Of a stretch of 60,876 nucleotides of DNA, positions 7,001 through 19,000 are shown one piece after another. The DNA lies in NCBI RefSeq assembly GCF_006345805.1, contig NW_021832136.1:1-60876 (forward strand), read 5' to 3'. The notes below the pieces were generated by a model. The model had not been told where the DNA came from. It saw only the letters and a program-made list of their open reading frames with translations, and did not search any database. The number at the start of each line of letters is the position of its first letter. Positions within the stretch are counted from its first letter, which is position 1. Both the position numbers and the translations under genes were made by a program. Source of the DNA: Octopus sinensis. Its lineage: Eukaryota.

Positions 7001-10000
7001 GATGCCAATAATATCGCTACAAGTTTTTCCCCACCCCCCCTCCTTCGTTCCTTTTTCTCTCTTTCCCTTTCTTTCGTTCCCCCTCCTTGCTCAGTATATG
7101 AGAATTGCTACATAGATGAATTTTAGCTTGCGTGCGAGACGGTTTGCGTGAATATATGTACACATGCTTTTATGTGTATAATTTAGATTCATATTCATAC
7201 GTCTGTATATGTATGTATGGCGTTTACGCGCATCCTTTTGTGTATGTTGATATATATATGTGGATTTTAATATAAATATGTATTGCAGTATTTATAACAG
7301 GTTTAATTTCTATGCATTAATTTGTACTGTCTTCATTAACGGCAATAGGTTTTTTCCTCGGTTTTTTTCCTCGGATTTTATAATTTTTATAAGTTTTTTT
7401 ATATATATATACATATATTTTTGACCTTTTTGTTTATCGCTCGAAGATTGACCGTTTTTTCTAAAGGGCCAATCAAACAAGTCCATTTCTTTTTAAAGGT
7501 GTAGCGTTTGTAAGAGTATAGATTGAATTATATATATGTTCCATTCTAGCAAAAACTGTCTGATGAACGGCAACGAGAAACTCAGAGTAACAGATTTTGT
7601 TGAATTTTCTGCTGCTTAAAATAAAGTATATATATATATATTATATTATATATATATATATATATATATATATATGAGCATTCTAGGTCCGTGTATTTGT
7701 GTGCAACATGCATAATAGTGGAAAATTCTGGAAAATAGTTTGTGGCACTAAAGAAATCATCCTTCCAGCATGACCGCAGCCAGTGAAAGAACAAAAAAAT
7801 AATAAGTGTATGTGTTTGTGCGCGTGAATGGGTGGTGTTCGTGTATGCGTATATATATATATGTGTATGTGTGTGGTTTCTGATTACAAATATGGTTTCT
7901 GATTACAAATCTAGAAAATTTCATACATATCATCATCTGGAAAAGATTTTCTAACTAGAAAGGGTATGGCCCGGTCAGCCTGTAATGACATGCATAAGAT
8001 CTGGTCATCAAATCTAAGTAGAAACTTCAATCTTGAAATCTTCAAAGCCACAGTCGAACCAATTCTACTATATGGCTCAGAAACATGGACATCATCAAAG
8101 AAGCTCGAGAGGCAGTTGGATGGAACTTACACTCGCCTCCTTATGAGAGCTCAAAATCTCTCGTGGAAGCGTCATCCAACCAAAATGCAAAGTTATGGGA
8201 AACTACCACCTGTGTCATCTCTTGTGAAAGGTAGGAGAGTCCAGTTTGTGGGACATTGTTGTAGAGCTGAAAAAGAGGTAATTTCTACTCTTCTCTGGAA
8301 GCCATCTACTCGCAATACCAGAGGGCGCACACTCTCCTACCCTGATGTAATCTCCAGGGATACAGGCATCCAGCAACAGGACCTCCATAATGATATGATG
8401 GACCGTGAAGTCTGGCGTAGCATGGTAAATTCCATTGTCTCGACCACGGTCGAACAATGATGATGATGATGATGTGTGTGTGTGTGTTGTGTGTGTGTGT
8501 TGTGTGTGTGTGTGTGTGTGTGTGTGTGTGTGTGTGTGTGTGTGTCTATTTGTTTGAATACAAATTTGCATTCGTAAAAAGAAAGCTATTTTCTCACCTT
8601 TTGGCATAATGCTGACCGAAAAGGAAGGATTGTCGCAAGCTTTGGAGTTGAGTTTATGTTGTTTCTTGGCGAAAATTACCAGAGTTAGATGATCATTTTT
8701 GGGTTTTTCCATAACAAATACAGTTCCAGGATATTCATCTTTTGCAGTCGTCTTATAGTCTTTCTCGTCTTCATGGTGGTGTTTTTTGTGAAAGGTAACG
8801 TGCATGGTAACCTCGGCACAATGGGCCTTCACCTGATCAGAACAGTAAAGATGTAAAATTAAGGGTCACCTCGATCATTTGATAGCGATATCATCCCATC
8901 AACATACTGTTTAGCCCTGACAATATCCCTTCTATTACCTGCAAATTTTATACCCCGATGCTACCCACTGACCTTACTGAATTTATCCAACTTTTCTATC
9001 TCAGTAGAAATCCTTCCTGATTTCTGGGAATACTATTTCATTAATCCTCTGCAATTACAGATTTATTTCCAACAGTCCCGAAAATTCAGACGGGATGTGA
9101 AGACGATCATCAACGATTCTTCTTCACCAATATCTTAAATCCTTCTCCCTGTTCAAGTATTATCAATATGGCTTCCATAAAAAAAGTTTATCCGTATCTC
9201 GTCTCTACCCAAGTTTACAGATCCGTCTATCTCTCTTCTCCTTATCGCCCATTCTGGATCTCACCCTCACAGTTCACCTATCAACTGCATGGTAACCTCG
9301 GCACAATGGGCCTTCACCTGATAAGAACAGTAAAGATGTAAAATTAAGGGTCACCTCGATCATTTGATAGCGATATCATCCCATCAACATACTGTCTGGC
9401 CCTGACAATATCCCTTCTATTACCTTCAAATTTGATAGCCCGACGCTACCCACTGACTTTAGTGAATTTTCCAACTTTTCGATCTCAATAAAAATCCTTC
9501 CTGATTTCTGGGAATACAATTTCTTTAATTCCCCGAAATTATAGATTTATTTCCCACAGTCCCGAAAATTCCGACAGGTTGTGGAGGCAATCATCAACGA
9601 TTCTTCACCAATACCTTAAATCCTTCTCCCTATTCAAGCATAGATTGGCATATTTCGGTCATATTATGCGGAGAGAATCCCTGGAGAAGGACATCATGCT
9701 CGGAATGGTCAGTGGCAAGAGAGGAAGAGGCCGACCAAGAACCCGCTGGCTTGACAACATCAAGAGTGATACCAGAATGGACATAGCCAATCTGAAGGAA
9801 GCGGCCCAGGATAGAACTGACTGGAGGACACTGATCCAACGAGTGACCGAGAGGCGACTTCGACTGAGCGGATATATATATATATATATTATGCGGTGAA
9901 AATCCCTGGAGAAGGACATCATGCTCGGAATGGTCAGTGGCAAGAGAGGAAGAGGCCGACCAAGAACCCACTGGCTTGAAACCATCAAGAGTGATACCGG

Positions 10001-16000: not shown

Positions 16001-19000
16001 AGGTGTGCCTACACCTGTTTGCATAAAGAACGTAGATTAACATTTGAAAAGGAAACCGTTTGCTCACCGTTTGGCTTGATGATGACCGAATATGAAGGAT
16101 GGTGATGGTCACAAACTGAGGCGTTGAGTCTATGTTGTCTCATGGCGATAATCGTTACAGTTAGATGATCCTCTTCTGTTTTTTTCATAACAGATACATA
16201 ATCAGGATGTCCATGTTTTGCGGTTGTTTTGTACACGTGCTGCTCTTCATGGTGATGTTTATTGTGAAAGGCAACGTGCATGGTAACCTCAGCACAATGG
16301 GCCTTCACCTGATCAGAACAGTAAAGATGTAAAATTAAGGGCCACCTCGATAGCGATATCATCCCATCAACGTACTATCCGGCCCTGACAATAACCCTTC
16401 TATTACCTTCAAATTTTATACCCCGATGCTACCCATTGACTTTACTGAATTTTCCAATTTTTCTATCTCAATAGAAATCCTTCATGATTTCTGGGAACAC
16501 CATTTCATTAATCCTCTGCAATTACAGATTTATTTCCAACAGTCCCGAAAATTCAGACGGGATGTGAAGGCAATCATCAATTATTCTTCTTCACCAATAT
16601 CTTAAATCCTCCCCCCTGTTCAAGTGTTACCAATATGGCTTCCATAAAAAAAGTTTATCCGTATCTCGTCTCTACCCAAGTTTACAGATCCGTCTATCTC
16701 TCTTCTCCTCATCGCCCATTCTGGATCTCACCCTCACAGTTCACCTATCAACTACATGGTAACCTCGGCACAATGGGCCTTCACCTGATCAGAACAGTAA
16801 AGATGTAAAATTAAGGCTCACCTCGATCATTTGATAGCGATATCATCCCATCAACATACTGTTTGGCCCTGACAATATCCCTTCTATTACCTTCAAATTT
16901 TATACCCCGATGCTACCCACTGACTTTACTGAATTTTCCAATTTTTCGATCTCAATAGAAATCCTTCCTGATTTCTGGGAATACCATTTCCTTAAATTCC
17001 CGAAATTACAGATTTATTTCCCACAGTCCCACATAGGCGCAGGAGTGGCTGTGTGGTAAGTAGCTTGTTTACCAACCACAGGGTTACGGGTTCAGTCCCA
17101 CTGCGTGGCACCTTGGGCAAGTGTCTTCTACTATAGCCTCGGGCCGACCAAAGCCTTGTGAGCGGATTTGGTAGACGGAAACTGAAAGAAGCCCGTCGTA
17201 TATATGTACATATATATATATGCGTGTGTGTGTTTGTGTGTCTGTGTTTGTCCCCCTAGCATTGCTTGACAACCGATGCTGGTGTGTTTATGTCCCCGTT
17301 ACTTAGCGGTTCGGCAAATGAGACCGATAGAATAAGTACTGGGCTTACAAAAGAATAAGTCCCGGGGTCGAGTTGATCGATTAAAGGCGGTGCTCCAGCA
17401 TGGCCACAGTCAAATGACTGAAACAAGTAAAAGAGAGTAAAGAGTGCCGAAAAAATTCAGATGGGATGTGAAGACAATCATCAACGATTCTTCTTCTCCA
17501 ATATCTTAAATCCTTCTCCCTAATAAAGGATTACCAATATAGCACCGCCTTTAATCGATCAACTCGACCCCGGGACTTATTCTTTTGTAAGCCCAGTACT
17601 TATTCTATCGGTCTCATTTGCCGAACCGCTAAGTAACAGGGACATAAACACACCAGCATCGGTTGTCAAGCGATGCTAGGGGGACAAACACAGACACACA
17701 AACACACACACGCATATATATATATATACATATATACGACGGGCTTCTTTCAGTTTCCGTCTACCAAATTCACTCACAGGACTTTGGTCGGCCCGAGGCT
17801 ATAGTAGAAGACACTTGCCCAAGGTGCCACGCAGTGGGACTGAACCCGGAACCATGTGGCTGGTAAGCAAGCTACTTACCACACAGCCACTCCTGCGCCT
17901 ATGTGGTTCTGTAGGAAATAAATCTGTAATTTTCATCTGTATCGCATCTATATACAAGTTTACAGACCCACCTTACTCTCCTCTCCTCATCACCAATTAT
18001 GAGATCTCACTCTCACTGCTCACTCATCAACTCATACACTCGAATTTTTATTTAAATCAGGCACAAACAGAACAACATACATATAAATCTGACTAGTTTC
18101 AGAAAAACAACGAGGTTTGCAGTCGTTCAACCAACACCTACCAGCACATATGACTAATCACAATCACATGACAATAAAAATATTGGGTTGTCCGGAAAGT
18201 TTATGCCGATTTATAGCAACTTACCTTTCGACTTATTTTAGAACATGGTTGTGTCCATAAAATAGGATTTGACTACACCTCCATTTAGAGCACAGTTTAA
18301 GCTATCTTTTCTTGGAAAAGATAGCTTATATGTTCCTATAACCTGTGTTAATTCTGTAACCATTTAAAATGGAAGATAAACAAAGTTCATTTTCGGAACT
18401 TGATGCTTTTCTTTTTCCGTAAAGGGAAAAATGCCTCACAAGCAACCAAAGAAATATGCGCAGTTTACGGTGATGTTTCTTTATCCGAAAGAACTGTACG
18501 GAAGTGGTTCGCAAGGTTCCGATCTGGAGATTGTAGCCTTATTGATAAAGAGCGATCAGGCAGACCATCAAGTACAGATGATGACCAAATCAAGTCATTA
18601 ATTGAGAATAACCCACATTGCACAACCGGAGAATTGGCAGAAAGCCTCAACCTATCAAAATCCATCGTCCATGAGCACCTGGTAAAGCTTGGGTAAGGGC
18701 AAGTATTTATTGACCTTTTTCTTTCTTTTAAAAATCGGCACGAACTTTCCGGACAACCCAAAAGACAAGAAACGTAGCTGATGTTGAGGAAGAATCGTCT
18801 TACCCAAATCATACTTCCTGAGGAATGCGTACTATTGCTGATTTCGAAAACTTGTTTGTGAATATGGCTTTTCATGGGAATACTGCTATTAATCATGTGA
18901 GTGACTTCACCAAAAACAGATTTCGCTGCAAACAAAAATCAATCATTTATAATGGTGTGGAGGCGCAATGGCCCAGTGGTTAGGGCAGCGGACTTGCGGT

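Follow-up and report, generated by a model that had tools for sequence, protein, structure and literature searches.

Gene organization of the locus

The window considered here is the whole 60,876-bp contig NW_021832136.1 of Octopus sinensis (GCF_006345805.1), which carries one minus-strand gene with a VWA domain and five tandem C-A-B-C' exon modules, each C-A-B-C' unit being 525 nt long and in frame. A preliminary description of this DNA had called attention to paralogous B exons that looked more diverged than the introns beside them. We report that the outlier is the intron block immediately upstream of exon B, not the exon; the intron is young rather than the exon fast. Inter-module gene conversion of short patches probably explains this contrast best.

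A search with five B-exon peptides retrieved XP_029654900 (LOC115228461, partial, 630 aa) and a small family of octopus VWA-domain proteins. The gene map was built by tblastn of P0001 and the paralogous proteins back onto the window, with splice sites read. The B exons lie on the minus strand and have canonical AG acceptor and GT donor splice sites. In the direction of transcription, the exons are as follows.

48538-48825, minus strand: N-terminal exon (tblastn)
45744-46327, minus strand: VWA exons (tblastn; 70-77% match to the VWA parts of P0003, P0009 and P0006)
45744-48825, minus strand: span of the N-terminal and VWA-domain exons, annotated separately as 'matrilin-3-like'
42472-42609, minus strand: exon A1 (module 1)
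40821-41060, minus strand: exon B1 (module 1), an ancestral-type module with the block absent upstream; matches the O. vulgaris ortholog P0036
39135-39242, minus strand: exon C1 (module 2)
36645-36776, minus strand: exon A2 (module 2)
32964-33209, minus strand: exon B2 (module 2)
31470-31553, minus strand: exon C'2 (module 2)
about 29009-29092, minus strand: exon C2 (module 3)
28052-28183, minus strand: exon A3 (module 3)
26044-26286, minus strand: exon B3 (module 3)
24483-24566, minus strand: exon C'3 (module 3)
about 23331-23420, minus strand: exon C3 (module 4)
18777-18932, minus strand: exon A4 (module 4)
16060-16308, minus strand: exon B4 (module 4)
14700-14783, minus strand: exon C'4 (module 4)
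about 12572-12655, minus strand: exon C4 (module 5)
10632-10772, minus strand: exon A5 (module 5), first half of A5+B5
8598-8832, minus strand: exon B5, second half of the A5+B5 beta-sandwich module (open reading frame (ORF), AG acceptor, GT donor)

Exon B5 is a 100% tblastn match to residues 553-630 of P0001. Two NCBI gene models are annotated on the contig, 'matrilin-3-like' XP_029654901 and LOC115228461; exons A1, B1 and C1 sit between them and are in neither model's protein (window 39135-48825). The O. vulgaris ortholog CAI9741726.1 (P0036; 1161 aa) has the same five modules in identical order and links the VWA part to them, followed by a terminal C'-like exon and a hydrophobic tail, both of which are off this contig. 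Because this ortholog joins the VWA part and the modules, the two NCBI models are resolved as one gene, whose first and last exons fall outside the contig.

The paralog LOC115230178 (L001) has annotated isoforms P0003, P0005 and P0007, among which X1 contains modules 1 and 2, X2 contains module 2 only and X3 contains module 1 only. A+B pairs thus act as alternative cassette exons in the gene models.

Divergence of the intron block and exon B

The block abuts the B acceptor at the same position in all four window modules that have it. Our alignment comprised these four (modules 2-5) together with two tandem second copies of the block, younger repeat insertions having been removed; distances are Kimura two-parameter (K2P) values, and SINE denotes a short interspersed nuclear element.

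8834-9282, minus strand: block upstream of B5, copy 1 (K2P 0.057 to module 4, 0.069 to module 2)
9283-10240, minus strand: tandem copy 2 of the block, module 5; begins with a pseudo-acceptor and the initial ~37 nt of exon B (9283-9320), with a transposon fragment inserted at 9639-10107
16310-16748, minus strand: block upstream of B4, copy 1
16749-18040 (16749-17030, 17452-17540 and 17928-18040), minus strand: tandem copy 2 of the block, module 4, interrupted by an inverted SINE pair
26987-27425, minus strand: module 3 block, unhomogenised (K2P 0.196-0.206 to modules 2, 4 and 5)
33855-34661 (33855-34153 and 34569-34661, with a SINE at 34154-34565), minus strand: module 2 block (93-98% identity to modules 5 and 4)

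The introns upstream of B5 and B4 had been described as matching at ~90% or more over ~450 bp, which was borne out: the two blocks are 94.5% identical (K2P 0.057, 440 aligned nt). The corresponding exons, said to match at 70-75% beyond their first ~50 nt and to differ by a 6-nt indel, are indeed 97% identical over the first 36 exon nt and 75.9% identical thereafter (K2P 0.29); B4 carries the 6-nt insertion GACCAT relative to B5, and amino-acid identity is 60%. A similar contrast was found between modules 5 and 2 (block 93.4%, K2P 0.069; B exon after nt 36 70.9%, K2P 0.37) and between modules 4 and 2 (block 93.8%, K2P 0.066; B exon after nt 36 72.4%, K2P 0.34). Module 3, whose block is parted from exon B3 by a ~680-bp repeat insertion (26311-26986), showed a weaker contrast with the others, the block being about 83% identical and the B exon 68-74%. 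The K2P of the exon body was 0.29-0.42, and that of the block to paralogous genes was 0.34-0.39.

Synonymous sites and the surrounding introns show which of the two elements is unusual. Among modules 2, 4 and 5, the proportion of synonymous differences (pS) was 0.28-0.34 versus 0.055-0.066 in the intron (Fisher p=1e-6 to 2e-4), and hence the silent sites match the remainder of the exon in age. Synonymous divergence (dS), which rests on about 35-43 synonymous sites per pair, was 0.30-0.57 for B2-B5 and 0.30-0.43 among modules 2, 4 and 5, i.e., about 5 times the intron divergence (0.06). The YN00 estimator was erratic or failed on these short exons, and the Nei-Gojobori method (NG86), maximum likelihood (ML) and raw counts were used instead. 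Other intron pieces of the same modules, the sequence immediately upstream of the block included, were 72-86% identical, and the distal halves of the tandem second copies were 78% identical. Local blastn segments provided this intron baseline; fixed-length flank alignments around exon A were unreliable where transposons had replaced sequence. The block is considered the outlier because the silent sites and the other intron pieces are as diverged as the exon body.

Breakpoints and mosaic structure

The modules are mosaics of stretches of discordant age, with sharp breakpoints between them. Maximum-chi-square change-points were significant by permutation (p<=0.001), with mismatch of 5.5-6.3% versus 26.5-29.3% across the break. 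For modules 5 and 4 the change-point lies at about exon nt 66, where mismatch rises from 5.5% to 26.5%, and for modules 5 and 2 as well as modules 4 and 2 it lies at about exon nt 18-21; the control pair, module 5 and the paralogous gene L001, gave no significant change-point in the same permutation test. In the block tree, modules 2, 4 and 5 were grouped at 100% bootstrap with module 3 outside, whereas the exon-body tree was star-like and gave the same clade 27%.

Modules 5 and 4 are aligned by blastn from 8577-9563 to 16047-17030, with the following high-identity tract.

8767-9563, minus strand, partner 16243-17030: tract shared by modules 5 and 4, spanning the tandem-duplication junction

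This tract ends 36-66 nt inside exon B. In both modules the upstream intron is a 486-bp tandem duplication, the unit of which runs from the block through the splice acceptor to ~37 nt into exon B; in module 5, 8797-9157 and 9283-9638 are 90.9% identical at an offset of 486 bp. Modules 4 and 5 have an identical duplication junction, CCATGCA/GTTGATAGG, which is a shared derived structure within otherwise old modules. The distal part of module 5 copy 2 (10108-10240) has only about 78-82% identity to the other copies.

The module 2 tract (33855-34661) has its upstream end at the point corresponding to the duplication junction of modules 4 and 5. Its downstream end lies exactly at a 184-bp-repeat insertion (33262-33854), where identity falls, and the 55 nt from this insertion to exon B2 (33210-33262) are like those of module 3.

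Several further structures were observed around the B acceptors. The pseudo-acceptors with the first ~37 nt of exon B, at 9283-9320 and 16755-16790 on the minus strand, precede the real acceptors of B5 and B4 by 486 bp and reach a stop codon when read through; these duplicated sites may be decoy 3' splice sites. An ectopic 260-bp copy (91%) of the module 2 distal block and its upstream flank (34570-34807) lies at 30916-31179, in the C'2-C2 intron. In the paralog LOC115230439 (L002), a 59-bp unit is repeated about 15 times at 21900-22796, directly upstream of the real B exon, and each unit combines a polypyrimidine tract and an AG acceptor with ~29 nt from the start of the B exon. The B acceptor region has thus been amplified in tandem repeatedly and independently within the family.

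The C' patch

A second homogenised patch was found around exon C'.

14472-15025, minus strand: C'4 patch (exon C'4 at 14700-14783), homogenised with the C'3 patch at 24256-24809 and less so with 31177-31612

Modules 4 and 3 are 95.7% identical over 555 nt of this patch, with 97% upstream of the exon, 95% in it and 93% downstream. The C' exons and their flanks had been called nearly identical across three modules, which holds for modules 4 and 3 but less so for module 2, whose identity amounts to 90-93% within the exon and 89-95% beyond it, and whose upstream flank is shared over only about 60 nt. The patch pairs module 4 with module 3 although the B blocks of these two modules are just 83% identical, and only about 1.2 kb separate it from the B4 block, which is partnered with modules 5 and 2. 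Adjacent patches with different partners indicate separate local exchanges, not one recent duplication. The C' tract takes in a whole exon. The C' acceptor region is also partly duplicated in tandem: a copy at 15024-15132, upstream of C'4, comprises upstream intron together with 11 nt from the start of exon C' and has 94.5% identity to 24556-24665.

Origin of the block

Two paralogous genes have the block as well, adjoining the acceptor of their third-module B exon; it is 71-77% identical there to the copies in the window.

24896-24983 and 25330-25698 in L001: block
11788-12827 in L003: block, split by a SINE

Because the same site is occupied in paralogous genes, the block is old, ancestral intron and not a young mobile element. 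Block K2P between L001 and L003 is 0.245 versus an exon dS of 0.23-0.27, which corresponds to the synonymous rate, and the window block tolerates a SINE, the 184-bp-repeat array and another repeat insertion; these two observations argue for a block without intrinsic constraint. In the roughly 140 kb of octopus sequence examined (window, L001, L002 and L003), no copies of the block turned up at unrelated positions, and a search of the whole window against Rfam gave zero matches. Neither an ORF nor a terminal repeat was seen in the block, although no systematic search for terminal repeats or target-site duplications was made. One ORF-carrying transposon family is inserted in the block at differing positions, namely in module 5 copy 2 (9639-10107), in L001 (24984-25329) and in L003 (about 11600-11786), the insertion site being common to L001 and L003.

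Inverted matches to the block were also sought. A 19-nt match (18/19) to a conserved block part lies at 32460-32478 on the minus strand, between B2 and C'2; it is probably due to chance, since about 0.15 such matches are expected over all block 19-mers. Complementarity of the docking/selector type was rejected, as the search gave just a SINE-associated inverted duplicate besides this 19-mer.

Protein evolution of the A+B module

The ratio of nonsynonymous to synonymous divergence (dN/dS, omega) for B2-B5 was 0.54-0.80 by NG86 and 0.60-0.96 by ML in pairwise comparisons. Codon models were fitted with our own implementation to A+B (116 codons) in six sequences, comprising modules 2-5 and two paralog modules, and their power is low. 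Under model M0, omega was 0.75, which indicates that the A+B domain evolves nearly neutrally and is weakly constrained. Model M1a placed 35-39% of codons at omega about 0.22-0.24, with the remainder neutral. The further class in model M2a, with 8-9% of codons at omega about 3, did not improve the fit over M1a significantly with this low-power data set (likelihood ratio test statistic 3.9-5.5, p=0.065-0.145). Pairwise omega for exons A3, A4 and A5 was 1.1-2.4, based on 40 codons. Positive selection on the module is possible, and relaxed constraint is sufficient.

Paralogous B exons have 47-63% amino-acid identity. The O. bimaculoides protein XP_014785007 contains a B3-like exon (71% amino-acid identity), then C', C and A, and then a B4-like exon (69%), an order indicating that the B3/B4 split predates the split from O. 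bimaculoides and that orthologous exons evolve fast too. Sites with at least 3 different residues among modules 2-5 were enriched outside predicted strands (20/52 vs 13/65, p=0.04). The predicted loops of B4 and B5 are histidine-rich (B4 with CDHHHP), and ancestral-type B1 and the paralogs are without such loops; these loops might bind metal.

Proposed gene conversion and alternative explanations

The modules are old duplicates, the exons and most introns of which have drifted to about 70-85% identity. We propose that non-allelic gene conversion or unequal exchange between modules has, far more recently, overwritten two short patches and reset both to 93-98% identity: a stretch of about 0.4-0.8 kb immediately before exon B, affecting modules 2, 4 and 5, and one of about 0.55 kb surrounding exon C', affecting modules 4, 3 and 2. 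The tract of modules 4 and 5 carries the common 486-bp tandem duplication and stops 36-66 nt inside exon B, and the module 2 tract stops at the transposon insertion 55 nt short of the exon. The B exon body simply lies outside the tracts, and its fast protein change would come from weak domain constraint (omega about 0.75). Homogenisation of the intron by gene conversion, which the preliminary description had offered as one of two readings, is thus supported by the fivefold excess of dS over intron divergence, the old neighbouring intron, the discordant trees and the differing partners of the C' patch. The further idea that conversion was excluded from the exon was overstated: one tract enters exon B, another stops at a transposon, and the C' tract covers an exon. 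What the sequence itself shows is the mosaic with its breakpoints, the discordant ages of its parts and the origin of the block as ancestral intron; conversion as the molecular mechanism, and whether or not selection keeps it off the exon, are what we infer from this pattern.

Several points weigh against this explanation. Synonymous sites are few (about 35-43 per pair) and the estimators disagree, with YN00 omega reaching up to 1.7. At baseline (module 3 and paralogous genes), the ratio of block divergence to exon dS is about 0.5-0.7, the block being somewhat less diverged; some rate difference or older conversion is thus present as well. The DNA is from one genome, and whether paralogous introns cluster by species, as is characteristic of concerted evolution, is beyond such data. 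Conversion should be inefficient at about 20-25% background divergence, so that repeated earlier rounds must be assumed. Misassembly of this small, unplaced long-read contig is also formally conceivable.

The other reading in the preliminary description was diversifying selection on the B surface, in the style of immune, venom or ligand-recognition proteins. If this were the main cause, the intron would show the true age of a young duplication. The fast protein change between B paralogs and between O. bimaculoides orthologs (only about 70% identity), the pairwise dN/dS above 1 for A3, A4 and A5, the codons fitted by M2a at omega about 3 and the variable sites outside predicted strands are all in its favor, but selection on amino acids cannot yield synonymous sites 5 times more diverged than the intron. 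Moreover, the neighbouring intron is as old as the exon, an old block copy is retained in module 3, the A-exon values are based on 40 codons, and neither B dN/dS (0.54-0.96), nor the M0 omega, nor the comparison of M2a with M1a demonstrates such selection, which is improbable as the main cause. The combination that the preliminary description named as refuting its reading, a dN/dS well below 1 with a dS comparable to intron divergence, was not found on either count. Recent duplication of whole modules is ruled out by the old adjacent intron (72-86% identity). It is possible, if rather doubtful, that conversion homogenises the modules while selection for module differences removes those events that reach the B exon body, as in long- and middle-wavelength (L/M) opsins. 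Both independent tracts stop within about 70 nt of the intron/exon junction, and the same pattern and interpretation have been reported for gibbon L/M opsins (PMC3213168). However, there are only two tract ends, one of them at a transposon insertion, which alone ends homology; the upstream tract ends lie likewise at structural discontinuities, and the weak exon constraint (omega 0.75) speaks against strong purifying selection keeping each module's sequence.

Explanations in which the block itself is special fare worse. That it is a functional intronic element (splicing control, enhancer or noncoding RNA) held similar by purifying selection is very improbable: it does sit immediately before a cassette-type exon pair, the gene models of LOC115230178 include skipped modules, and the block can be aligned across paralogous genes, but its divergence between L001 and L003 matches the synonymous rate, the copy in module 3 differs by 17%, its copies are split by SINEs and other inserted repeats, Rfam gave zero matches, and the sole inverted match is the 19-mer expected about 0.15 times by chance. 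A young mobile element or satellite inserted independently beside each B exon might be suggested by the tandem duplication in two modules and the ectopic 260-bp fragment at 30916-31179. This idea, already raised in the preliminary description, is refuted by the presence of the block at the same acceptor-abutting site in four modules and two paralogous genes, zero copies were found at unrelated sites in the octopus sequence searched, and the ectopic fragment carries non-block module 2 flank, which marks it as a segmental copy; such an origin is hardly credible. We also consider it unlikely in the extreme, if slightly less so than a constrained element, that the block and the recurrent amplification of the B acceptor (the 486-bp duplicate in modules 4 and 5, and the 59-bp unit repeated 15 times in LOC115230439) are part of a splicing control that chooses among the diversified A+B modules for the mRNA, giving a Dscam-like combinatorial repertoire. 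If that were true, the octopus would have a combinatorial repertoire of extracellular recognition or matrix proteins, and selection would put up with conversion in the control element but act against it in the variable exon.

Comparison with known systems

The locus is a new example of a phenomenon already known from opsin, major histocompatibility complex (MHC) and venom genes. In MHC class I and II genes, recombination or conversion homogenises introns, and the diversity of peptide-binding exons persists. Unlike the octopus modules, MHC exon diversity is allelic and is under balancing selection with dN>dS at binding sites; the octopus evidence does not extend to this. Nakashima et al. (1993/1995) reportedly observed that introns of phospholipase A2 (PLA2) venom genes are much more similar than their protein-coding exons. 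Snake venom families, such as PLA2 and three-finger toxins, have intron segments >85% similar and profoundly different exons, a pattern termed 'accelerated evolution' (PMC2711939). The octopus gene resembles venom genes in that the exon synonymous rate exceeds the intron rate. However, dN/dS is commonly >1 in venom genes, whereas in octopus B exons it is <1 and the site test is not significant; the octopus protein also shows no sign of a venom role, and its relatives look like extracellular-matrix proteins.

In primate L/M opsin genes, conversion homogenises the introns and the central exons stay divergent; gibbon L/M opsins show exon divergence significantly above intron divergence, intron divergence below synonymous divergence, discordant trees, and conversion tracts mostly in introns (Hiwatashi et al. 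2011, PMC3213168). The octopus tandem units are like primate L/M opsins in these respects, with exon and intron trees that disagree, although the octopus side of the comparison rests on the DNA of one genome. In contrast to the opsins, which are separate genes under purifying selection at few tuning sites, the octopus units are modules inside one gene with a weakly constrained exon (omega 0.75). The locus is a clean single-locus example of why an exon more diverged than its intron should not lead to a claim of positive selection before synonymous sites and neighbouring introns have been checked. It is also a documented case of concerted evolution within a gene, the tracts ending at transposon insertions and a duplication junction, in which respect cephalopod genomes have been little described.

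Fold and relatives of the A+B module

Each A+B pair encodes a predicted beta-sandwich of ~118 residues, and the locus thereby defines a hitherto uncharacterised beta-sandwich module restricted to molluscs, which in octopus has been amplified and evolves fast. AlphaFold, given 15 aligned A+B modules, predicted an eight-strand beta-sandwich (predicted local distance difference test score (pLDDT) 79, predicted template modelling score (pTM) 0.74). No fold family could be assigned, as Foldseek returned only generic beta-sandwich or jelly-roll folds (CBM61, GOLD domain, ColG collagen-binding domain and MAM) with E>1e-3 and TM-scores of at most 0.55. A Pfam scan of the B peptides and whole proteins gave no family for the module and VWA alone, in paralogs (PF00092, recorded for the O. 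vulgaris ortholog too), and a PDB sequence profile search with the module gave a chance-level match only (E=0.82).

A profile search with A+B against 1.84 billion representative proteins retrieved only 19 proteins, and every relative whose source was looked up was molluscan (octopods, Argonauta, Sepia, Pinctada, Tegillarca and Littorina). The non-octopod relatives (Pinctada, Tegillarca, Littorina and Sepia) are VWA-module-CBM_14 (chitin-binding) proteins, the domain order of which resembles that of Pif/BMSP-like proteins. In the octopus gene, the VWA domain is likewise N-terminal to the modules. Unlike these molluscan proteins, the octopus gene and its O. vulgaris ortholog are without CBM_14, which was absent from P0001, P0003 and P0009 in the domain scan and is not on record for P0036; they have instead 1-5 module copies, small Cys-rich linkers and a hydrophobic C-terminal tail. 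A literature search for this octopus protein family found nothing. The domain context suggests an extracellular-matrix role for the module and not one in venom or immunity.

Repeats on the contig

The contig is heavily repeat-laden (window 1-8460, 13309-13737, 49199-54167 and many other sites). Reverse-transcriptase ORFs lie at 4496-6295, with fragments at 598-921 and 1511-1807, and 1-944 and 1487-2428 form an inverted duplicate. A SINE of ~430 bp is present in >15 copies, the 184-bp repeat family occurs, e.g., at 33262-33854 and 41353-41772, and a ~190-bp satellite extends across 5 kb of the contig.

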